Shown here: positions 29,554-63,200 of the stretch, piece by piece | Position numbering within the stretch: the first letter of the stretch is position 1 | Layout: the number at the start of each line of letters is the position of its first letter | Origin: Paramoeba atlantica | Lineage: Eukaryota > Protista > Discosea | Reading direction: 5' to 3' | Length of the DNA stretch: 64,000 nucleotides | Assembly (NCBI GenBank): GCA_977017575.1 | Contig: CDRNVI010000039.1 | Span: forward strand, 682,001 to 746,000 | The notes under the pieces: generated by a model | Seen by the model: only the letters and a program-made list of their open reading frames with translations | Database searches by the model: none | What the model was told of the DNA's origin: nothing | Made by a program: the position numbers and the translations under genes

Positions 29554-30057
29554 TTACATAGGGTCTACATGTACATGGCCAGCTCTTGGAGCTGAGCTCA
29601 GGAGTCCTTCTTTTATGTCATAATTATGCTCTTCTCGGGTCAACCCGTCCGCTGGGTTTTCTTTAGATTTAATATAGAAAATTCGAAAAGAATGTCCATG
29701 TTTCCCTATCTGTTCATCCATTTCCGTGATCTTATTACATATCGATCTCCTAACTGATGTACGCCCCGATTCTGATGGTATTTCACTCTGGTGAAACCAG
29801 TGTCGCATATCAGCGGATAAAAAGTTTACGTTGGGGAAATTTTCTATTACATGGATAATTTCAGCGATAGCTGGAAAATTCAAGCAAGGAGGGCGATTGC
29901 ACATCTCATTTAGTGGTGTTCCATCCGCAATACTTCTTGACAATTCCTCCCCTTTTGATGCCTCAAAGTAACGTAAATATAAACGTGATGATGATCGAGA
30001 GTCGTGTGCCACACGTAGCACCCCGCATTCCACGAGGTCTAATAAATGTTGTAACAA
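29554..30057 (-). mobile_element. Internally deleted RT/RNase H remnant of a DIRS-type YR retrotransposon (third family)
   Basis: LVECGVL, RSIADGTPLN, SADMRHWFHQ joined directly to the RNase H end YIKSKENPADGLTR. Confidence 0.8.
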
Positions 30058-30059
30058 TG

Positions 30060-30315
30060 GGCCTCGTTACAGAGGATGAATATATAAATGCAACGGCAAG
30101 TGTGCCCCGAAGGACACGGAGCCCATGGGCCTCCCAGCACGAATGCTGGGGCGGTGGTACCCCGAAGGGTACGGAGCCCATGGGGCTCGTTACAGAGGAT
30201 GAATAAATGCAACGGCAAGTGTGTCCCGAAGGAAACGGAGCCCATGAGCCTCCCAGCACGAATGCTGGGGCGGTGGTACCCAGAAGGGTACGGAGCCCAT
30301 GGTCCTCGTTACAGA
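30060..30315. repeat. About 120-bp tandem repeat (about 2.1 copies) with three hairpins per unit
   Basis: CTCGTTACAGAG at 30064, 30186 and 30305; the minus strand carries C(TTCG)G-capped stems. Confidence 0.85.
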
Positions 30316-30482
30316 GACTGGAGTATTGCCAGGCCGGGGCCAAGCGAATTGATGCGTGACATTTGCAGGCGTGTAAGATTGTTTAGTTAAATGGAGCTAA
30401 ATGTAGTAGTTCTACTGGATACTAGAAACAAGTAGTTCAGTTATATTCTTAAGTTCATAATCGTGCTATAGTTGTGTTGAAA

Positions 30483-30553
30483 TCTTCACCCTCACACTCC
30501 GCCTAATATGGCGGTGCCGGGCTTGGGACCGGTAACAAACGTGTTTATGAAGA
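30483..30553 (-). ncRNA. Twister ribozyme, type P1 with P5 stem
   Basis: TCTTCA-TAA-ACAC-GT-TTGTTA-CCGG-TCCCAAGC-CCGG-CA-CCGCC(ATATTA)GGCGG-A-GTGT-GAGGG-TGAAGA. P1, P2, P4, P5, both pseudoknots and the catalytic G are all present. Confidence 0.9.
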
Positions 30554-31041
30554 GTGATAATGTCGGATTCAGTGCTCTGAGAGCAAAAATACGCGAAAAA
30601 CACCCCATTTTTACCCGAAAATCTGCTACTTTTGGCGCAAATCCTTCAGTTTTCTTCAGCTTTCCAGGTCAAATTTTCTTTTTTAGGCTCTTCGTTAAAC
30701 GCGGAGGTAGTTTTCAACGCGAAGCACGCAGCATGAGTGACTTCTTTTGAAATTGTGCAACACTTTCAAAAGTTGCAAAAAAAAATCACAAATTTTTGCG
30801 AACGCAGTAATAGGTCATGTTTGGCAGCAATTAAGAAGAGATCAACGAAGTCAGATGGGATCAACATTCTATTTCTATTTCTATTTGTCAGGCCGTTTGT
30901 CCAACTAGGGATATGGCCTCACCAGAGAAGGCTGGTACGCCCCTTCCAAGATTACTTTGGTGTCTGTTGTGCTCAGTCCGATCGAGAAAAGTCATCGAGT
31001 CAGCGACTGATTGGCGTGCACTAAGAACACCGATGAACCGT

Positions 31042-31278
31042 ACCCTAGTTGCCTGTTGTCTGGTTATCTTGACACCGGGTGGTTCACCACGAGAAAGATC
31101 GCTACCCTAGTTGTTTAGTGCCTTGTTATGTTGGCACCGGGCAGTCTCTTTACAAAAATATTCCTAACACCCTAGTTATTTAACGTCTCGTTTTGTTGAC
31201 GCCGGGTGCTGGAATTTCAGAAAGCGATAGTGTACGCTCACCCTAGTCCTTTAGCGTCTCGTTATGTTGACGCCGGGT
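31042..31278 (-). ncRNA. Array of four structured hairpin motifs of unknown family
   Basis: 38-bp cores at 31042, 31104, 31169 and 31240, separated by 24, 27 and 33 bp of unique sequence; covarying 5-bp inner stems. Confidence 0.7.
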
Positions 31279-31329
31279 GAGTTAGCTCGGGAGGCTGGGA
31301 TCGCTAAGTCCCATCATCCGACATAAGCC

Positions 31330-31425
31330 GGATGCTCTGATTGCTCTGGCAGATGCATGTGGGATGATGCGCAAGCGCATCTATGCCGAATTTCAGCTGC
31401 TGCTACAGGAACTCAATGGGGAGGT
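31330..31425 (+). mobile_element. Short CRE-clade endonuclease C-terminal fragment
   Basis: ALADACGMMRKRIYAEFQLLLQELNG matches ALADACGMQRKRVYAEFQLLLQELNG of 60676-61539. Confidence 0.85.
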
Positions 31426-32059
31426 GGTTTATTCACAACTCAGTGAATACCTCCACAAGGATGGTAAAAGTCGCGCTTGTGCGTTCTAAGATGTGTAACG
31501 GTGTGCCGCCTGGGATCAACATTGAATTGAAACAGTTATTAAATTTTCTAAAAAAGACGGAAATAGCAGTTAAACCACATTAAGTATCTACCAAAAAGAA
31601 CCCTGCAGATCCGATAAGTCGTCAATAAATATTCGCCCTTGGGAAATAAACAAAAAAAAAGAGAGAGGTGGATGGCGGGTTAGGGCATTCTATATAACAA
31701 CGAGCTAAAGGGACAGAACAATGACTGGCGAAAGGGTGGTCCCCGCGTGGACACTCGTTCGCGTAAGGAAGAGATAAATCTCTTGGCGGTGGAGTTCAGT
31801 GTTGATATGTTTTATTGGTTATCTTGTTGCGGTGGTTGTATAACTACCGCTCTACCCTCGATTATAGAAAGTATCTCCCCGCACGAGAAACGCCTTAGCG
31901 CTTGCTGGCTCGGAGACGAACTTGGTGCGGGGAGATACCATTTCTTTTCAGTGGGAATCTGCCACGCCTGTTGCTTCGTATCTCCCTCGCCCCTTTCAAT
32001 CTGGGTTATCTCCCAGCTGGCCACCTTTCCATAACATGGCGATCTGTAACAACACTCTC

Positions 32060-32710
32060 TAAATGGAACACCAGTGCAGCCACTGGTGGCGCACGGTCTC
32101 TCATGTGGGTGTTTCATGTGCAGCCACCTGCACCCACGTTCCACTCTAGCTACACACTGCATCAATACAGTCACCGCCTCACGTGGCAGTACACTTACTC
32201 TCGCACTTGCCACTGTAGCTACATTGCATTACTTCAGTCACTTCCTCACGTGGCAGTGCACTTACTCTCACACTGCAGTCACTGACTCTCTCACGCGCCA
32301 CTGCATCTGCACTGCGTTCACTGCCTCACGTGGCAGTACACTTACTCTCTCACGTGCCACTGCATCTACACTGCGTTCACTGCCTCACGTGGCAGTACAC
32401 TTAGAGTACTCTTTCACGTACCACTGTACTTACAGTGGTAGTGCACTTACTCTCGCACGTGCCACTGCAGCTGCACTGCATCACTGCAGTCACTTCCTCA
32501 CGTGGCAGTGCTCTTACTCTCTCACGCGCCTCTGCAGCTGCACTGCATCAATACAGTCACTGCCTCCCGTGGCAGTACACTAACTCTCTCAAGTGCCACT
32601 GCAGCTGCACTGCATCACTGCAGTCACTTCCTCACGTGGCGGTGCACTTACTCTCGCACATGCCACTGCAGCTACACTGCCGTCACTGACTTTCTCACGC
32701 GCCACTGTAT
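32060..32710. repeat. Degenerate minisatellite built from CACTGC / CTCACGTGGCAGT / CTTACTCTC units
   Basis: Recurrent imperfect units of about 55-60 bp. Confidence 0.8.
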
Positions 32711-32742
32711 CTACAATAAAAATTCCCGCTCACGTCTGTGGC

Positions 32743-32839
32743 CTCCTTTAACCCTGCTTATAGTATAAGCAGGGCAATAATATACCGGTCCAAAGCCCGG
32801 GACCCACAAGGACACAGTGGGGAATGGTGATGGAAGGAG
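32743..32839 (+). ncRNA. Second, slightly degenerate twister ribozyme
   Basis: CTCCTT-TAA-CCCT-GC...A-CCGG-TCCAAAGC-CCGG-P5(CCCAC/GTGGG)-ATGGT-GATGG-AAGGAG. T1 pseudoknot is CCA/TGG instead of CCC/GGG; P2 is imperfect. Confidence 0.65.
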
Positions 32840-32886
32840 CGAAATAGAAAAGCTAGTCCAAGAAGGTTTGGGTATGAATCCTTACA

Positions 32887-32980
32887 GGGTACGTTCGTTG
32901 AGTACTCAACGAAAATCCGACGGTTCGTTGAGTACTCAACGAAAATCAGGTTTTTCGTTGAGAACTCGACGAACGTACCC
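32887..32980. repeat. 94-bp fold-back unit with three 20-bp palindromes at 30-bp spacing
   Basis: TTCGTTGAGTACTCAACGAA at 32894 and 32924, degenerate at 32954; ends GGGTACGTTCG / CGAACGTACCC. Confidence 0.85.
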
Positions 32981-33012
32981 CCAAGCCGTGTAGATGTCAT
33001 TCTGACAACGCA

Positions 33013-33077
33013 GAATGGGTGGCACCGCCCGGTACCGAATATAACAAGGTACTAAGAAACTTGGGTGGGTGCCATTC
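33013..33077 (+). ncRNA. Single copy of the unknown hairpin motif (homologous to 38567-38627)
   Basis: GCCC-G-GTACC-GAATATAACAA-GGTAC-TAAGAAACTT-GGGT; lower stem GGCAC/GTGCC versus GACAC/GTGTC in the other copy. Confidence 0.7.
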
Positions 33078-33196
33078 GAGATAAAATTTTATATCCAATT
33101 GGCACTCCTGTATACACCACACAGGGGTGAAAACTTCCATCTGGGCGGGTGTCTAAAATTTGTAAAATACAAATAAATAAACTTAGAATTTTTCAA

Positions 33197-33544
33197 TTAG
33201 CGGACACCCGCCTTCCTCCACTCTTTTACCGCGGAGGATAGTATCGCGGGGTTGCCTTTTTGAACAGCCACATTAATGGCTTGTAGTGCATGACGCAGGA
33301 AACCTTTCCTGTCATACGTATACCTTGCGATCTCCTTTAGGAGGAGTACGGTGCGCTTCCCTGCCACACCAAAAACGGTAAATGCAAGGGGGTAGAAATG
33401 CATACCCCTTTTCGTGGCCATGTCACTGTGCGCTTTTACTTTCAAGCTTTCCACCCTTTCTAGAGTGTTGCCAGGCGCTACCCATTCGGCCTTAACATAA
33501 GAAGGGGCGAGGGGGACATTCGGGATAATCTTTGGAATGTGTTT
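33197..33544 (-). mobile_element. CRE-clade endonuclease 3' fragment
   Basis: PLAPSYV, K...GMHFYPLAFTVFG..G, AVQKGN; similar to 12619-13257. Confidence 0.8.
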
Positions 33545-34432
33545 GAATTGCGCTTCGAGGAACATATAAAACAGTAGAAAGAACAATAGAAAGCTTTATA
33601 AAATATCACAAATATACTTCCCTCATTTGCACACTACATTCCTCAGATTTTCTCTTGCCATAAATCCTTTCAGAAAATCTGCATACTTGCTGTAAAGTAG
33701 CTAATAAAAACAAGATCACCAATACAACATATCAACCCTGAACTCCACCACCAAGAGATTTCTTGGTGGTTCAAAGGAAGTTTTCTTCCTTACGCGAACG
33801 GGTGTCCACGCGGGGAATGGTTATGGGGGTTGGTGGGTGGGGCAAAAAATTTTAAAACTGGAAATGAAAATGTTTTCTATAGATACACGTATACTCAATT
33901 CCAAACGCTTCAAATTCTTATGAAAGTCATAATAAAGAAATATTATGTGCCCCGCAGGGCCAGTTATCACTCTTATAAACCTCTTGCACAATTCTTTCCG
34001 TAAACTTTTAGAATTGCGCTTCGAGGAACATATAAAACAGTAGAAAGAACAATAGAAAGCTTTATAAAATATCACAAATATACTTCCCTTATTCGCACAC
34101 TACATTCCTCTGATTTTCTCTTGCCATAAATCCTTTCAGAAAATCTGCATGCTTGCTGTAAAGTAACCAATAAAAACAAGATCACCAATAAAACATATCA
34201 ACCCTGAACTCCACTACCAAGAGATTTCTCTCTTCCTTACGCGAACGTGTGTCCACGCGGGGACCGCAAAAAATTTTAAAACTGGAAATGAAAATGTTTC
34301 CTATAGATACACCTATACTCAATTCCAAACGCTTCAAATTCTTATGAAAGTCATAATAAAGAAATATTATGTGCCCCGCAGGGCCAGTTATCACTCTTAT
34401 AAACCTCTTGCACAATTCTTTCCGTAACCTTT
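33545..34432 (-). mobile_element. Non-autonomous mini YR element consisting only of split direct repeats A1-B1-A2-linker-B2
   Basis: 466-bp-period duplication. Shares the G-rich linker, the B|A junction (CGTAAACTTTTA|GAATT) and AAATATTATGTGCCCCG.AGGGCCA with the TATE-like element. Confidence 0.8.
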
Positions 34433-34904
34433 TTTTTTTGGTGTTTTTTTATCCACCCTCAAAAGATAGGGTGGTTTTTTTTTGTCAAGGGGCACCTTAT
34501 TTGCATTACCTAAGGTGCAGGGGTATAGCGCACCCCACCTCCCTAGCTGTAACCTAACTCCTCTCCAAGCGGAGGTCAGCCGTAGCTTGTTATGGCTGGC
34601 TCTCCGGATACGTCGAAAGACGTATTCGGACTGCCCGTTTGGGGAGTTGAGGGGCCATAACGTTTCGGAGTCAAAAGGCCCAATACATCATCATCATCAT
34701 CATGAATCCTTTCCAGAAAACAAGAGGGGGGCGCAGAAAGTGGTTTTGGTCCAGCAGGGTTAAAGGAGGCCACAGACGTGAGCGGGAAGTATGGCGTCAC
34801 GCACGTGACGCTCACTTCTTGTCTCTCCACCGGAGCTCGATCCTTCGCCTTGACGTGGCGCTCCGGCTTACCACCCTTTTGGGTGAACCAAGAAGGGATC
34901 AGTC

Positions 34905-35367
34905 ACGTAAATTGTACCAGACGCGGTACAGAGGGAGAGGGCGACACCCCTGACGGTTTCATAAATAGTACCAGACGCGGTACAGAAGAGTAGGGCGACA
35001 CCCCTAACGGGTCGCATAAATAGTACCAGACGCGGTACAGAAGAATAGGGCGACACCCCTAACGGGTCGCATAAATAGTACCAGACGCGGTACAGAAGAG
35101 TCAGGTGACACTCCTGACCGGTCGCATAAATAGTACCAGACGCGATACAGAAGAGCAGGACGACACCCGTGACGGGTCGCATGAATAGTACCAGATGCGG
35201 TACAGAAGAGTAGGGCTACACCCGTGACGGGTCGCACAAATAGTACCAGACGCGGTACAGAAGAATAGGGCGACACCCCTGACGGGTCGCATAAACAGCA
35301 CCAGACGCGGTGCAGAAGGTGAGAACGACACCCCTGTTGGTTACAATAACCGTACCAGACGCGGTAG
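34905..35367. repeat. 55-bp tandem repeat, 9 copies, two hairpins per unit
   Basis: GTACCAGACGCGGTAC at 34914, 34968, 35023, 35078, 35133, 35188, 35243, 35298 and 35352. Confidence 0.92.
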
Positions 35368-35823
35368 TAGGTGGTTCAAAACACGAATTCCATCACAAAT
35401 GGTACCGTTGACGAAGATTGTTGTTGAATGTTGTTAGGCTTTCTATCCCATTCGGGATGTTGCCTCCCCGGAGTAAGCCGAGGTAGCTTTGGGGGAGGCT
35501 ATTACTCAAAGGTGGATTTTCATCCACCTTGTCCGCTGAAACTATCTTAACCCTTTCAGGTTGAGACATTCAAATCCAAGGACAGCATGCAAAATCCAAG
35601 GACTACATAAGTGTGTTCCGCAGGACCGAGAGTGGCCTCCCCCGGAGTAGCCGCCCATTACTGCTTGCTGGCATAGTTCGGGAGCGTTGAGTCTCAGCTT
35701 CAACAGTTTAGACTCCTCAGCTTCAATGGACCAAGTCTTCTAGGGTGTTATACAACAACAACAACAAATACACTGAGTCCTTTTTAGTGGACCAGTTAGG
35801 GGCTCTCGAGTAGGTTTTTTTAA

Positions 35824-35941
35824 GAGTACAACACTCAGGGTTCCCGAGCGATCGCTCACCTCAGTACTAACTGAGCCTGACGGTGCTTAACTTCACAAAG
35901 CGAACGGGATGTGGTGTTTTCACCGTAGTATGGTCGTACCC
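35824..35941 (-). rRNA. 5S rRNA copy 1 (118 nt)
   Basis: GGGTACGACCATAC...CCCGTTCGCTTTGTGAAGTTAAGC...GTTAGTAC...GGGAACCC..GTGTTGTACTC; kinetoplastid-type 5' end, helices pair. Confidence 0.95.
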
Positions 35942-35954
35942 TTTTTTTTAAAAA

Positions 35955-36072
35955 GAGTACAACACTCAGGGTTCCCGAGCGATCGCTCACCTCGGTACTA
36001 ACTGAGCCTGACGGTGCTTAACTTCACAAAGCGAACGGGATGTGGTGTTTTCACCGTAGTATGGTCGTACCC
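35955..36072 (-). rRNA. 5S rRNA copy 2 (118 nt)
   Basis: Identical to copy 1 except one structure-compatible change (U.G to C-G); 13-bp T5A8 spacer. Confidence 0.95.
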
Positions 36073-36302
36073 CCGTGCTATACCCCCGAGTGGCCTTGGC
36101 TTCTCAGCTTCAAAGGGCTAAACCTCGGCTTCAAAGGGCTCCTATCTCTCCGAATTCTGACCCTAACCCCGTTTTAATGGGTTATTTGCAAGCCGCAGAT
36201 GAGCGGTACCCAACCCGAAAAGCGGTATGAAGTTCCCCTTAGGGGCTCATCTTCAGGTGCATTTCAGGCCTATCCATTACAGGGTCTAGCGTTCACACAG
36301 TT

Positions 36303-37254
36303 TTAGTTCCTTGGGAATGATTTTTTAGTACCTCTGTTTAACGTTTGGGTTTTCGTGCTCTTTCTATATTCATCTATTGTCTTTATCCAACTTTTTTTAT
36401 TCTGGGCTTTCAGTTTCGATGAGCAATCTGTTGTTATCCCAACTCTTTCCAGTGCAGCTACAAGGCTTCTACTATAGCATGGCAGGCTTCGTTTATATGT
36501 ATTTCCTCTATTTTGAGTTGATCGATATTTGCCGAATAGCACTCTGTTCGGGAATCTATCTGGACCCATTCTTGCGACGTGTCCAGCAAACAGTAAACTT
36601 CGGGCATCTATTTGTGGCTGGAGTGGGTCCATTCCTGCGATCGATAGGCATTCCTTCTGGGAGGTATATCTTATTGCATCCTTCGCAGATTCTTGGTGTT
36701 GTTTATCATTGGAGTCGCTATTGTCGTTCTTGACCCATGGTATGCCGAAAGATGTTTTGATGTATCTTATATAGGCGCGGTTGAGTTTCAGATGCTGGGT
36801 TTGTGTAAGCGCCCACGTTGAGCTCGCATATAGTAGAATTGGTACTATACAGACTTCTAGGATGTCTTTTCGTTTTCCTTGTGATAGCCTTATCTTTCCA
36901 CAAGTCTCTAAATTTTCTCATACCTGCGCAAGCTCTTCCTATTCTGTTTTCTATTTCTTCTTCCAATGAAGCATCTTCACTGATGACTGTTCCAAGGTAT
37001 GAGAAGTTCCGTACTTGTTCAATAGTTTCTTCTTGTGCTTTTATCTCGGATGTGTAATACTTTTCAGCTTTGCAAGGTTGAATTACCTGTGTTTTAGTTT
37101 TCCTTGTGTTTATCCTTACTCCCCATCGGTTCATAACCCCTACTACTGACGAAGACTGTACCGTTATCATTCCACCCATGCGACTGCATAAGATGGGATT
37201 CCGACAACATTGTATAGATGCTGAAATGAATTTTGATAGACCAGACAGAAGCAT
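36303..37254 (-). mobile_element. RTE-like non-LTR retrotransposon 3' remnant (RT end and thumb), frameshifted
   Basis: GVRINTRKTK, IEQV..FSYLG..IS......EEI..RI..A, and LLFAGHVARMGPDRFPNRVLFG. Confidence 0.88.
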
Positions 37255-37789
37255 TTCTTGTTTTTCGAAGTGATTACCGAAACATGAGAAATCCTTTAGA
37301 TGGTAATTGCGGCACTTTGATCTCGCCCCGGTGGAGAGACAAGAAATGCTTCTAGGCTCAGCTCTGAAGACTAGAAGCTAACTTCTTGGCTTGACATTGA
37401 GGGAGAGTCCTTCATCATCTACTAATGCAATGTAGAAATACGAGTGTGATGAAATGTGCCAATATGAATATGATCCACCGCAATATGAGAAAACGTGTAG
37501 CCTACATAATTTTATAGGTGATATCAAACGGTTGCGTACAATTTACATACTATATGTCAGACTCGGAGACGGACATCGCTATACTCAACTGCATCGAGGG
37601 CGAGTACAAGGTTCTCGAAAAGTACGTTCTACTTAATATTATAGAAAAGAAAAGTGGACACCCCTTTTCATTGCTTTACATAACAATTGGCCAAAGCGAC
37701 ATTCCTTCACTCTCTCCGTGCTCAAAGCTGTGGGAGAAACCATTCCCGATGCTGAAAAACTGGATGTTGCTAGTCTAGTTGAAGACGGC

Positions 37790-38429
37790 AAATAGGATGA
37801 CAAAAAGGTGACGGGAAAGCTCCTTCTCGAAATTGCGCGAAACGCGCTCAATAAGATAGAGGTTGATCGCGCGGACGAAGAAGCGAAACCGAAGATGCAT
37901 GAGACAAACTCGTCAGAGGAGGGTGTACTCTTCGCTCTCATCGGAAACTACGCGGCACCTAAACTCTCTCAGACGTTCATTGACTCGATAGCACCACCAG
38001 GGGTTATCGCCACCCGACAAAGTTTGGGAATGAAAAGGGCGATTGCTGACTCTCTGGAAGTAGGGGAGGAAGCTTTATTGGAAGAACACGCTGTCGGCGG
38101 AGCGGGATTGCTGAACGCAAAATGGTTGACACGAGGTGTTCATCAAATGGTATGGAAGCTACTGAGCAAGGTAGCGGGAAGGGTGATGAACGGAACGGGG
38201 AAGCCATCAAAACCTCATGGGAGACAACGATACCGCTAATATTGTACGCAATGCGGTTGCTAAAAAGGCAAAAATGATGTTAACAACGCAGCGGTTGCGC
38301 ATGAAAAATATAAATGCACTCAACAACAATCCATCATTACTGGACAGGAGAGCGTATCTCCCCCCGTATGTCAGGGCATTCGACTTTTGTCGAATGATGG
38401 GGCGTAGCGACCCCAGCTTCCCTAGCTAA
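37790..38429 (+). mobile_element. Degenerate non-LTR RT thumb-region remnant whose 3' UTR carries the hairpin array
   Basis: LIGNYAAPKL...MKRAIADSL...HAVGGAGLL resembles the Y..PKL...GGLGL thumb pattern of REL-type elements. Confidence 0.5.
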
Positions 38430-38432
38430 CTC

Positions 38433-38627
38433 ACCCGGCGTCGCACAACAAGACGCTACATACCTAGGGTGGGTACGATCAAGGTCCCGCGGATGACGCT
38501 ACCCGGTGCCAGCAAAACAAGGCACAAAATAACTAGGGTAACGGTCACCCAGACATCGCAGCGTGAGAATGACACCGCCCGGTACCGGATATAACAAGGT
38601 ACTAAGGAACTAGGGTGGGTGTCATTC
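38433..38627 (+). ncRNA. Array of three copies of the unknown hairpin motif
   Basis: Cores at 38433, 38501 and 38577; inner stems GCGTC/GACGC, GTGCC/GGCAC, GTACC/GGTAC. The upstream 45 bp is homologous to the flank of the 31042-31278 array. Confidence 0.7.
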
Positions 38628-38969
38628 AGCATAATCTTTAGAGTGTGTTGTGTTTTTTCACTTCAAAAGAAGTGTTTTTTTCATAAAGAAGATTTTCTTG
38701 TAGTATATAAAAGGGGTTAAAAAAAAAGATAAGCTGGCTGCTCGCGCTCGATCTGGTCAAATCTTCGGATTTGACCAGCGTGCTGCGTGGCACAGCTCCT
38801 AGCAAGCGATAAGGGGGGGCTTGTTCTAGGGAGGTAACATCTCCTCGGAGATATAATGCCTAAAAAATCAAAATCATGACCGCGGAAAGAGCGAAAGGAA
38901 GTGTCATGCATCAACAAAATTGGGATGGAAGCATGTCAGGCTCACGAAAAGACCCTTCTCTTTTTTTGA

Positions 38970-40452
38970 TTGAACGTAGGGCCAAATGATACGATTACTC
39001 TAGGAAATTACGGCATTGTACCAAGGGTTGACTCATATCGATATCTAGGCCACATGAAACACTCGCATAAGAATCGAGCCACTTTACAAGACCGTATACA
39101 ATTAGCTTGGAGAGCATTTCATCGCTTAAAGCCGCTCTGGAGGGAACATTTAAGTGTAACGCTCCGCCTGAGAATATTTAATGCTCTTGTAACATCAGTT
39201 TTGTCGTACGGTTTAGCCTCTTTGGTTCCGACAGGTGTAGAATTAAAGATACTTGACACAGAAGTCAATAAGATGCGCAGAATAGCGACAGGGACGCCGT
39301 TGTGGGATGGTTATAAGCAAATACCAACATGTGCGCTGTATAGGGGAGAACCGAAAGTTTCAACGCTCCTGAGAGTCAACCGCGCTAAACTAGTTGGACA
39401 CCTTTTGCGGCATGATTCCCCTTTTGCGAATGTTGCATTATGGAACATAAGGGAAGAGGCACGCATACGCTCATTGTCTGAAGCTTGTGCCCAGGATCTA
39501 GCAATAGATCCAATAGAAATGCACGAACGGGCACTTGATCGATGTTCTTGGCGTAATCTTATTCAGAATTTGTACCAACGACTAGAACCTATCGCCTATT
39601 ATAATCCTTTTGATTCAACTAAAAGAATAGCAGAAGTTGCAAAGATTTTGCAATCGAATCAAAACTCTCTGGAAAAATGGCACGCATTGCAGTTTCAAGA
39701 GGAGAGTGAGACACTTTGGCCCCATAACAACTTGCTTCATATATATTGTGATGGTTCAGTGAGAAAGCTTTCGAACAATATATTCGCAGGGGCATGTGCT
39801 GTAGCCTTCGAAGGAAACGAGATTCTAGCGACTAACGACAAAACGTTGGACTCTATTAACGCAACACCAATACGGGCAGAGCTTTCAGCTTTCTTATTGG
39901 CATTATCAACTGGTCAAGAGAAGAACGTATCTTTCATAGTACACGTAGACTCCGAGCATACATGGAATTTCTGGCACAATTACCGTCGCGCATATCAATT
40001 GGGTCATTATGATGGACTTGAGAATGCCGATTTGTTGATTCAAATAAACAGTCTAGCACAGGAAATAAACAAGAAACATGAAATTCTAGTTGTCAAAGTC
40101 AGAGCACATTGTGGTAATTCAAGGAATGAACATGTGGACCAAATTGCAAAGGAAAGTGCAACATCTGAGTCTATAAGCGTCGCGGAGCCCTATATGAATA
40201 TATGGAGTATCATTCTGGCACAGCAGCACAAAACATCGATGGCTCCGTCAATTTCGTCTGAACGGCAGCATCCAACAAACATATCGCCTGTGAATATTGC
40301 GTGTAAACATCCGTGTAAAGATAAAAGAACGTGTGGTCATAAGTGTTGCAAACGACATTTGTGAATAGCATTGAAAGGTTATTAATTTAGTGACATAATC
40401 AAGGACTCTTAGCCACTTATAACACAGTGGTGTATTATTATTATTATTATTT
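38970..40452 (+). mobile_element. 5'-truncated RTE-like non-LTR element with RNase H and terminal Cys cluster (ORF 38970-40364), (TAT)n tail
   Basis: YRYLG, RIQLAWRAF..L..LW, LVGHLLRH, R..WR; RNase H IYCDGS...RAELSA...VDS...NADL...VRAH.G..RNE.VD.IAK; CKHPCKDKRTCGHKCCK. Confidence 0.88.
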
Positions 40453-46596: not shown

Positions 46597-46637
46597 CAAC
46601 AAGGTACAGAAACTGTATCTTTATCGTTAATCTTTAT
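46597..46637 (-). other. Near-complete spliced-leader exon copy at the gag trans-splice acceptor
   Basis: ATAAAGAT-TAACGATAAAGATACAGTTTCTGTACCTTGTTG|CGACAC; the sister copy has ...GTGTATAG|CGACAC at the same point. Confidence 0.9.
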
Positions 46638-47215
46638 CGCAATTTGAAAAGGGTAAAAGAAGGAGTGTCGCTATACACAAAAACAATATATATTACTTCA
46701 TCCCGAGTACTACTAAATTATAAATTTCATTACATCTAACAACGGGTGCCCCTTTCGGGGCCACAATCTGTAAAAACAAATCATAATATAAATATTATGT
46801 GCCCCGAAGGGCCATTATGTCAATCATCCTAAATTTCTAAACGTATACTTCTAAAAAGCGTAACTAGTTGGGCGAGAGCCTTCAAAACACTGAAAAATAG
46901 AACTGTTGCTCGGCTCATTATTAATGCCAAGGAAGCGAGTCGACTTGTTAACGAACCTCCGCACATCGAACTTCCTTCCCCAGAGGACATAAGGAAAGAA
47001 CTTTTATGCCTCTTTGTTATGTGACAGGAGACCTTCGTCATTGGTTTTATCAACTTCCCATTTGCGATAGAAATCCACGCCGAGGGGGCTCCATGAAACA
47101 TATAGGTAACAAACAAATATAAGTAAATACCTATGACTAATATAATCACACTTCCAAATCGTCCCAAAATCAAAGAACACATAATACGATATATAGATAG
47201 AATTCACACGCATAA

Positions 47216-60252: not shown

Positions 60253-63200
60253 TTTTTTTTTTTTGCTAGAACTACATTGTAAATGGAAATATTTGTGGTG
60301 CATTTGTAGGAATTTGGAGTATGCCAGACGCATACGTTTAAACTTTAATATAATAAAATAGCGTCAATTGACGCATGACGTCAGAAACGGAGGGCTGACC
60401 GTCCGGCATAGGATGGCGGAATAGTCGTAGTTTCTTAAATTCAACTTATAGAATGTTGTGTGTTCAAGAAACTCCAACATGAAATTTTCTTAATTTGCGT
60501 CTATAGAAAACCATTTTATACATAAAATATCTTTTTTTTTTTTTTATTGTGCAATTCTTTTCGTAAACTTTTATAGTTTTTTTTTCATTCTTATATTATA
60601 TGTTCTTAGATTCTCAGCGTTAGATTCTCAGCGAATTGAAATCAGTGCACTGGCGAAGGCGCATTGTTCCGTGCTTTAGAAGGCATATTCCCGACTTTTG
60701 TCCTCCTTGCGAAGGTATCGACTCAGCTGTGAATATGCTACCGCCCCATTAAGCTCCTGCAACAATAGCTGAAATTCGGCATAAACGCGTTTGCGCTGCA
60801 TTCCACAGGCATCTGCGAGAGCATCCATAAGAGCCTTCGTGTTTGAATGCATTGCACCCCCTGAGAGGACAGGTATACATTGAAAGCTTTCAGCCATGAT
60901 CTTCCCGGTCTTGACGTATGTGTCATGTTTTCGTCGACAGGCGTCGCGGAATAAATGTGCACACTTTGTGTCAAGGTTTGAGGGTGCCAATTCGTGGATG
61001 ACTGTTAGATCGTAGTATATCTCGCCGGTTGCCCAATATATAACAATGTCAGGACCGGACCGATGAAACGACCGCCCACCACACGTTTTCTCGTGAAGTT
61101 TTCGGTGATTGGGGTTAACGATCTCGTTACATTGTGTGCAGCGGAAAGTTGACAGTGCACGGGGCTCCTTTTCGCACGGAATGCCTGTTTTCATACAGAG
61201 TTCGTAAATGAAGTTGACCAGAGTGTTGTGTTTAGTCGTGGCATTGAGACCACCGCATTTTGTACAGCCCATGATGTGTGTCAAGATTGAATCGGAGTCA
61301 AGAAGAATTCTGCAGCCGGGGCATGTGATGTGTGATGGCAGATCTGGGTGAGCGATCCCCAATCGTGGCATGACGGCGAGACTGAACAGGTGTGATGGTA
61401 TGAGTCGCGCGTCAGAGTGCGTCCATCCGTTATTGCCTTTGTGTGTTACTTTTTCGAGTACCTTCGCTATGTTTGATTGCTCGCAGTAGAATTTCATCGC
61501 AACGAAATTTATCTCAGCAAAACTAGAAAAAGTTAGCATAAATAATGATCGCAGGCACCGCAGACCTGAATATCAAGAACACCATATGCAGTGTTGTATT
61601 TTGATTTTTGAGGTGACATGCATCACGCAAGAGACGTGCACTCCTCAGCAGGAAGAAGGAAACTTCCTGTCTCTTCAGTTTGCCGGAGCGTAAATGGGTT
61701 ATCCGTGCTCATCAACAAACCTCCGAGACAAGAAGTCTCACTTTCCTCTGTTTCAGAGTACACAATCTCATCACTTACCCATTGAAAGCATTCCGCAACA
61801 CTCTCCATCTTTCCAGTTTGCCGGAGCGTAAGTGGGTTTTCCGTGCTCATCAACAAACCTTCAAAATGAAGAGTGTCTCGTCCTGCTTTCAACGAGCACA
61901 TGATCTTTTTGCATGCGCATGCCACACTCAGTGCCTTTTTCACCTTTCCAGTGTCGTTTGCTTCGGAGCGCGGGCGAAAGCGAGGGTCCTCCGACGATGT
62001 GACATTTGAAAGGATCATAAAAGGAATAAAAATCAACAAGGTACAGAAACAAGGTAATCAACAAGGTACAGAAATTGCTCGCGGGTCATCTTTTTCCAAA
62101 TTTTGATGTGCTTTTGAGCCGCCGTCGTGGTTTCGTCTACCGGAGGTATGTTGCTCTGAAGGTGGTCCGTTGATCCAACATTTCGCTCCCTGATTCCATC
62201 TGTCCGAGCTGAATTGTTTTTGGGGCGCTCAAGAACAGAGTGGCATGAGGAGCGGTACGCGGCCTCTCGCGTGGAAGAGCAGTCTGTCAAGCCGAGTCCT
62301 CCTTTTCTTGTGGGCATTCGCAGCAACGCGATTTGTTCATCCGAGAGATGTCCGAACCATGATGTAAGAACGTTTTCTACCTCTTTGTCGAATCGGGTCG
62401 CTAGTTCAGCTGAAGCGGTGGGGTTGTGTGCACGGAGGTGGTAGGCCTGTCTAACGTTTATACATCTGGAAAGCAGATTGCACGATACATTGTTAACCCC
62501 CATCAATTTGAGCCGTCGGAAGCTGTCGTTGTGCTTCGTCAGTGACTGTATTAGGCGTTCGCTGACCGATTTGTCGTCCCCGATGAAAGCCCCAAGGATT
62601 TTTGTTGCTTTTTTTTTGGTGATTACCCCGGCGCTCTCTAATTCTTGTGGTAATGGTTCTTCTTCCAGTCCGCCAAACCAGACACATTTTTTGGGAGCAA
62701 CTATTAGATTTTGTTCCTCTAGAAGCGTTTTTAGTCGGGAGAAGGCACTGGCCAATCGCTCGGGGTTTTTTGACGCAATAGTTACATCATCGACATAAGC
62801 GTTGATTGTGATATCAGGGTGCTCTGCAGACAGAGTTTCAAGGATTGGTTGCAATAGGGCACAGAAATAAACCGATGAAAGTGTGGACCCTTGTCGGACA
62901 CCATTTGTGCTTGGAATTGTTCCTGCATGGTGACCTTGATTTCCGCAGTATAGCAACTCAGATGCCGTTGCGTATTCAGCATGGAAAAACCTCTGGAAGG
63001 GTTTCAATGTAGCAAGACCATATACGGCTTTCGCCAGGGCTGGTCGCGATGGGGAGTTGAAGGCGTTTTTTACATCTACGGATAGGATGCACGAGCCGTC
63101 GCGATATAGGGAGTTTAGCCGATGTACAATCTTCTCGCAGCCTGACTTAGATAGAACTCCTTGTTGGAGCGGCGCAAATAGCGGTTGCAGGGTGGGTTCA

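Follow-up and report, generated by a model that had tools for sequence, protein, structure and literature searches.

A tandemly repeated, bulged RNA hairpin of LINE 3' UTRs and short retroposons in a spliced-leader protist, and its putative role in template recognition

What kind of sequence repeats a small hairpin in clusters along protist DNA, and what might the hairpin do there? The stretch analysed here (the window; 64 kb, C39:682001-746000, from the 45.7-Mb assembly, in 248 contigs, of a spliced-leader protist) holds eight units of a bulged hairpin of 39-40 nt at three loci and none beyond these. An earlier note on this DNA had listed eight such instances, and all of them were recovered in place by two routes: a loose pattern (CCCGG, four free bases, a gap of 18-34 bases, and CTWGGGT), which gave eight units in the 64-kb window against 0.2 expected and never eight in 100 shuffles, and a covariance model of the kind that the note had called for (R1), which returned the same eight units only, at 45-62 bits. 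Across both strands of the whole assembly a stricter pattern had at least 369 matches (zero for the reversed-pattern control), and all 150 genome candidates that were scored with R1, distributed over dozens of contigs, matched the model. A search of the window with Rfam 15 produced only two matches at the gathering score, both to 5S rRNA, and no family, the known self-cleaving ribozymes and snoRNAs included, overlapped a unit even at E<=10. A metagenome scan for relatives outside this genome, with a pattern specifying 21 bases, gave a single chance match in a simple repeat (16 bits). All unit copies are located within retroposons, and the units flagged by R1 are a real, structured and strand-specific RNA module of these elements.

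Fold, covariation and strand of the unit

An alignment of 56 distinct units, drawn from the window and fetched loci, was scored with a structure comprising a 4-bp outer helix (ACCC/GGGU) and a 5-bp inner helix. Ninety-seven percent of the cells pair, double-sided changes occur in six of the nine pairs, and the covariation score (0.41 vs 0.24 for shuffled alignments) was attained in none of 500 shuffles; when the 3' partners were slid as a control, pairing fell to 18-43% of cells. That the inner stem covaries, as the earlier note had claimed, is seen in its four pairs with double changes and in at least eight fully complementary stem versions in the genome. The G that follows CCC pairs with the first base of the bulge (G.U in 41 and G-C in 10 of the 56 units); the inner helix is therefore 6 bp long and the bulge 9 nt, instead of the 5 bp and 10 nt given before, the anatomy being otherwise as described. 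The 5' strand of a unit is thus one continuous 10-nt helix strand, whereas the 3' strand bears the 9-nt bulge AA..AACUA, and the loop is A-rich, 9-11 nt long, and ends in AAC(A/G)A. Among the unpaired positions, conservation is seen at A.AAC(A/G)A on the 3' flank of the loop and in the bulge.

The spacers between units form lower stems, as had been proposed, with a mean of 6.9 flank-flank pairs (4.1 with shuffled flanks) and in agreement with minimum free energy folds. The repeat-spacer appearance of the arrays is accordingly superficial, the spacers being the lower stems of the same hairpins. The strand asymmetry reported earlier holds as well: we counted 64 G.U pairs on the A-rich strand and seven A.C oppositions, the counterparts of G.U in the complement, and the fold z-scores of both arrays against shuffles lay far below zero on the A-rich strand (-3.84 and -3.58) but not on its complement (-2.44 and -0.98). 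In the repeat-tailed elements that carry the units, the sense strand is the A-rich one. A degenerate fourth unit (20 bits with R1) was seen at L051:6705-6742 (-) and L035:7277-7316 (+), where an outer helix CTTGTC/GACAAG replaces CCC/GGG and the inner stem reads GTACA/TGTAC; the architecture of the unit can survive full replacement of the outer helix.

Arrays in the window and the retroposons that carry them

The arrays of the window sit in short derivatives or fragments of elements, with no intact RT gene adjoining. Locus 1 lies on the minus strand and opens with a 60-nt leader (31282-31341) that reads as the last 19 codons of a frame plus TAA (IRASGLCRMMGLSDPSLPS and stop), folds into a tetraloop-capped 8-bp hairpin and a GGGA/TCCC hairpin, and is 82-94% identical to the leaders of all families. 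Four units follow: unit 1 (31240-31278; GCGTC/GACGC; 55.0 bits with R1, confirmed by folding), unit 2 (31169-31207; GCGTC/GACGT with one G.U; 57.4 bits, lower stem of eight pairs), unit 3 (31104-31142; GTGCC/GGCAC; 62.1 bits) and unit 4 (31042-31080; an imperfect GTGTC/GACA; 45.4 bits, lower stem of nine pairs). Within the remainder of the element (30866-31041), positions 30866-30886 make up a short (AAATAG)n-like tail, in which the element probably ends. No target duplication was seen around this element, and its body had no homologue among the fetched loci. We considered whether the region upstream of locus 1 might be a LINE ORF and rejected this, stops being present in all frames; within this region, 31342-31489 has a 78% match at 60676-60823.

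Locus 3 is a fragment of 95 nt on the plus strand (32990-33084), cut off on both sides and made up of a spacer, a GTACC-type unit (33027-33066; 54.6 bits) and a lower stem; BLAST matches to many families are limited to this interval. About 150 nt upstream of it, at 32745-32837 (+), there is a weak twister-P1 match (23.4 bits vs a gathering score of 67.2; E 0.22). Repeat blocks also lie between the loci, namely a 67-nt tandem, a 30-nt palindromic triple and a 55-nt tandem of seven copies (32155-32726, 32887-32980 and 34899-35393).

Locus 2, on the plus strand, is a short derivative of about 500 nt (38370-38876) that begins 57 nt before a stop codon. Its leader (38370-38429) comprises the last 19 codons of a frame (VRAFDFCRMMGRSDPSFPS) and TAA at 38427-38429, and this stop precedes unit A by 4 nt. 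Unit A (38433-38470; GCGTC/GACGC; 51.6 bits, confirmed by folding), unit B (38501-38539; GTGCC/GGCAC; 61.2 bits) and unit C (38577-38616; GTACC/GGTAC; 56.8 bits, with a 10-bp lower stem) are followed by the body and an A/ATCA-rich tail (38617-38876), and alignment with copies that are 91-97% identical places the 3' end of the element in the tail at 38858-38876. The array had been described as standing directly after the stop of a non-LTR-like ORF. This is literally so at 38427-38429, but of that frame the element takes in no more than the last 20 codons (38370-38429), and the sequence upstream is unrelated flank; the upstream "ORF", which is not common to other copies and has no Pfam match, was rejected as part of it.

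All of these locus-2 copies share their first base (window 38370, GTCAGGGC...) as well as an A/ATCA-rich tail, and the genome contains at least 41 copies at 92-98% identity, including one with an 11-bp target duplication (L022) and another that is 5'-truncated inside unit A. A second short family (at least 40 copies, 98-100% identical) ends in (ATC)n and includes a full copy with a 6-bp duplication (L067) and a 5'-truncated copy with a 9-bp duplication (L057). Shared ends, repeat tails, target duplications and 5' truncations together identify the short elements as retroposons copied from RNA of the A-rich strand. The unit-bearing short families are about 500-700 nt long. We also looked for the head of a classical SINE: ARAGORN found no tRNA in 30000-40000 and the leader had no Rfam match, and the idea of tRNA-, 7SL- or 5S-like SINEs was abandoned, none of these heads being found and the leader reading as the end of a LINE ORF. 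Two nested events were noticed at the same spot of the unit-A bulge (TACATACCTAGGG): at L017:1400-1475 a tail-only (TGAT)n insert lies between a 13-bp duplication, and at L004:515-546 a new element starts right behind a 3' fragment of unit A.

The link to autonomous elements was read directly in L010 (-), where the C-terminus of a LINE ORF with GHVSRM and DRVKWR motifs (...IGHVSRMGPERMPNRVFFG...AQDRVKWRS...) is followed by a stop, two units and an (AACT)n tail. This C-terminus is 35% identical (E 7e-14) to that of a LINE remnant in the window (36303-36632). The two units, at 827-789 and 762-724, score 48.9 and 48.5 bits, the second being absent from the seed alignment, and they lie about 150 nt from the stop and about 150 nt from the tail. 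Genome copies of this family are 99-100% identical, full or progressively 5'-truncated with staggered 5' ends, and all of them reach the tail, a pattern that marks an active LINE. Another family, about 80% identical, retains one unit together with the last 130 nt of an L010-type 3' UTR.

For the locus-2 family the putative tie to LINE ORFs was drawn from coordinates. When the C-terminal domain of L010 was used as a protein query, 42%-identical matches came up at five loci of this family, in open frames of 1178, 877, 877, 470 and 159 aa, and each match ends exactly 73 nt before the R1 match to unit B, a position that, mapped to the window, is the TAA at 38427-38429. The LINE-linked loci include C66:329.6k, C54:82.8k, C29:115.5k and C43:663.8k. 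Some of the five may be segmental duplicates, and two probably duplicate each other. The short non-coding derivatives are essentially the last 500 nt or so of unit-bearing LINEs. We had also considered the array as the head of a LINE 5' UTR, since in L051 it precedes ORFs that include a 1643-aa R2-like RT and in L057 an 859-aa RT ORF. Genome copies of these two array families stop after about 700 and about 420 nt of the query, respectively, short of those ORFs, which are therefore neighbours and not parts of the elements; the adjacency was put down to nesting and the idea was dropped. Elsewhere in the window two 5S rRNA copies, 131 bp apart (35823-36072), abut the end of a LINE 3' UTR at 36075.

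A putative docking site and competing readings

The earlier note had suggested an RT-recognition or protein-binding module in a retroelement 3' UTR. The 3'-UTR position is supported, by direct reading in L010 and by coordinates in the locus-2 family, and recognition is plausible but putative. From the observed structure, covariation, strand and retroposon context we infer protein binding and a role in template choice, and we favour, with somewhat better than even confidence, the reading that the units are a multi-copy recognition hairpin for the RT or another protein of stringent-type LINEs, common to their SINE-like derivatives. Each unit is an RNA hairpin on the A-rich strand, in which a lower stem of free sequence, ACCC/GGGU and an inner stem of free sequence present two conserved, A-rich unpaired patches. 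One to four of these units would follow the stop codon closely in LINEs whose 3' UTRs end in short tandem-repeat tails. The ORF2/RT of the element, or another element protein, would bind the conserved unpaired bases presented by the helix and so select the RNA as template, and target-primed reverse transcription would start at the repeat tail; units in series might raise avidity, and the short derivatives would spread through carrying the same site.

The combination of a free-sequence helix with conserved A-rich patches, the position in a LINE 3' UTR and the sharing with derivatives fits the rule of stringent-type LINEs. In particular, the units of L010 occupy the 3' UTR of a non-LTR element and precede its short-repeat tail, the units are shared with non-autonomous partners (the short families of at least 41 and at least 40 copies), and their structure is kept by compensatory changes. 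Some observations run contrary to the docking reading: the units are 150-260 nt upstream of the tail, and families with (ATCA)n, (ATC)n and (AACT)n tails all carry them. As families with different tails share units, one cognate RT per family is putative. The 3' UTR and 5' RNA motifs of R2 elements are likewise folded, fast-evolving and bound by the element's own protein to choose the template. These R2 motifs are single large folds, in contrast to the repeated small hairpins described here, and the R2-like ORF of L051 lies outside the unit-bearing element.

Stringent-type LINEs require a 3' stem-loop that is bound by their ORF2 and shared by their partner SINEs (PMC4176376, PMC1636434). The closest parallels are UnaL2/UnaSINE1 of eel and ZfL2-1/2 of zebrafish, in which the hairpin is ORF2-bound and needed for mobility (PMC4176376, PMC1636434). 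The units resemble them in being a LINE 3' UTR hairpin upstream of a short tandem-repeat tail, in being common to non-coding partner elements, and in that stem pairing is kept while unpaired bases carry specificity, the binding being a prediction in our case. However, there is no sequence likeness to UnaL2 or ZfL2, the units have a 9-nt 3' bulge and a loop of 9-11 nt, and they occur in tandem arrays of one to four; whereas the hairpin of stringent LINEs stands beside the tail, the units are 150-260 nt away from it and, in one family, 4 nt after the stop. The units give a defined, covariation-backed RNA motif, absent from Rfam, for retroposons of a spliced-leader protist that has been little studied, and a candidate mechanism by which these LINEs, and the numerous young short elements derived from them, would pick their template. 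Their tandem layout, large A-rich bulge and post-stop position could be used to test multivalent hairpins in template choice, and for annotation R1 picks up several hundred copies of retroposons that escape protein-based searches.

Among the other explanations, the one that survives best, although we think it unlikely, is that the leader and array form an internal promoter, or an RNA-processing or stabilising signal, of an RNA that starts at a fixed G, in the manner of Pr77. Pr77 is a hallmark of trypanosomatid L1Tc/ingi, NARTc/RIME and SIDER elements, and the short elements among them start with it (PMC3383444, PMC4035085); as a precedent (PMC3383444, PMC4748587, PMC8190864) it resembles the present case in being a conserved structured block of autonomous and short retroposons in a kinetoplastid-type genome, with short elements starting at a fixed base. 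Inspection of 43 head starts showed that true heads from several families share one starting G and that the flanks before it are unrelated. Families with different bodies and tails retain both leader and units. In some short copies the first bases of the leader are repeated as a stutter of 14-16 nt, which is what RT would leave on running off a genuine RNA 5' end. Partial leader copies of 14-16 nt were seen directly upstream of complete leaders at L006:1418-1437 and 1945-1964 and at L007:1421-1436, and they resemble the product of end-to-end template jumping at the 5' end of an RNA. The stutter suggests that the fixed base is a real RNA 5' end and, with the fixed start of most short copies, points to an additional 5'-end function beyond the docking model.

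Against a 5'-end signal, compensatory changes and the G.U bias favour RNA structure over a double-stranded DNA promoter, the L010 units occupy a 3' UTR without a leader, the leader reads like an ORF terminus, and the two apparent LINEs with a 5' array (L051 and L057) dissolved when the extent of their copies was checked. The frame of the 60-nt leader (19 codons plus TAA, VRAFDFCRMMGRSDPSFPS in locus 2) is kept in most families, one family having a 1-nt insertion that shifts it, and variable sites number 5, 4 and 8 at the three codon positions, which is no more than suggestive of coding constraint. Pr77 itself is the first 77 nt of a LINE and combines a promoter with an HDV-like ribozyme of double-pseudoknot fold, whereas the unit block lies at the LINE 3' end, shares no sequence with Pr77 and shows no HDV-like match at E<=10 on the units. 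Hence the units were rejected as a Pr77- or HDV-like head, being 3' of the ORF, without an HDV-family match at E<=10, and with both 5'-head candidates discarded. An HDV-like fold of the leader, tried by hand, was also given up: the first 7 nt lack a P1 partner kept between families, and Rfam is silent.

A less probable proposal goes beyond passive docking: the GTACC-type unit would be an antisense mimic of stem-loop I of the spliced-leader (SL) RNA, and the array would capture SL RNA or its proteins for the retroposon, or else the leader and units would be an uncatalogued processing element (such as a ribozyme or nuclease site) that makes the fixed 5' end. We give still less credence to the idea that the units are docking sites for SL RNA or the remnant of an antisense copy of an SL gene. 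The true SL RNA gene was read in L046, within a 1454-bp tandem repeat on contig C3 (near 780.7 kb) that also holds a 5S gene (SL exon at L046:1486-1523 and 2940-2977; 5S rRNA at L046:626-698 and 2478-2550); its 5S gene is identical to the 5S copies of the window. The 3' half of the SL and its stem-loop I find their antisense in the loop AACAA, the arm GGUAC and the bulge AGAAACU. GTACC-type units match the antisense SL in 17 of 19 nt, including the loop of stem-loop I (16 of 19 nt in unit C of locus 2), with a score of 27 against a null maximum of 26 (1000 shuffles x 19 units) and a predicted duplex of -18.4 kcal/mol, at about the first percentile of background 40-mers; the head compared with SL RNA also gave p<0.002 for family 2 and p=0.02 for locus 2. 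However, the other unit types stay at background (-9.9 to -13 kcal/mol), locus 1 lacks the likeness (p=0.28), some of the matching bases fall within the unit's own stem, and no mechanism ties SL pairing to the life cycle of a retroposon. SL pairing was rejected as a general property of the units, being confined to the GTACC type, and is unlikely as a general function; the likeness of the GTACC type may reflect ancestry or chance.

It is more improbable again that the repeats harbour, in these units, a novel self-cleaving ribozyme or the precursor of a small RNA (snoRNA- or miRNA-like). A conserved, structured and strand-specific motif outside Rfam, the sharp 5' end of the short elements and the weak twister-P1 match at 32745-32837 could be cited for it, but no known ribozyme, C/D or H/ACA model matches any unit at E<=10, a plain bulged hairpin with free stem and variable copy number is unlike catalytic cores, and the first unit begins 63 nt downstream of the fixed 5' end. 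One to four units per element and free stem sequence argue for a binding site rather than a catalytic core, and the new ribozyme or small-RNA class that the earlier note had also suggested was not upheld, given the lack of Rfam overlap at E<=10, the copy number and free stems, and the confinement of all copies to retroposons. Least probable of all is an action in DNA, as preferred insertion or recombination sites or as protein-bound double-stranded motifs: the nested insertions in L017 and L004, at the same place of the unit-A bulge, would agree with it, but they are two events only, more than 30 copy flanks have no common target, and covariation with a G.U bias is unexpected for a duplex DNA site.

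Spliced leader copies in the genome

The SL string had no match in the literature. Its last 20 nt occur 877 times genome-wide (e.g., L040:1500, L041:1500 and, in the window, 46600-46640 (-), 47216 (+) and 11005 (-)), and many of these matches are full leaders with an A-run before and gene-like sequence after them, which look like retro-copied trans-spliced mRNAs. A probe of the last 23 nt of the SL plus the GT splice junction had 417 matches with at most one mismatch, the true SL genes included. In an abundant class of elements (L042-L045, L048 and L049, near position 1500) the last 26 nt or so of the SL are joined to GTACATTTT... instead of the SL intron, and the upstream flanks of these elements are mutually unrelated.
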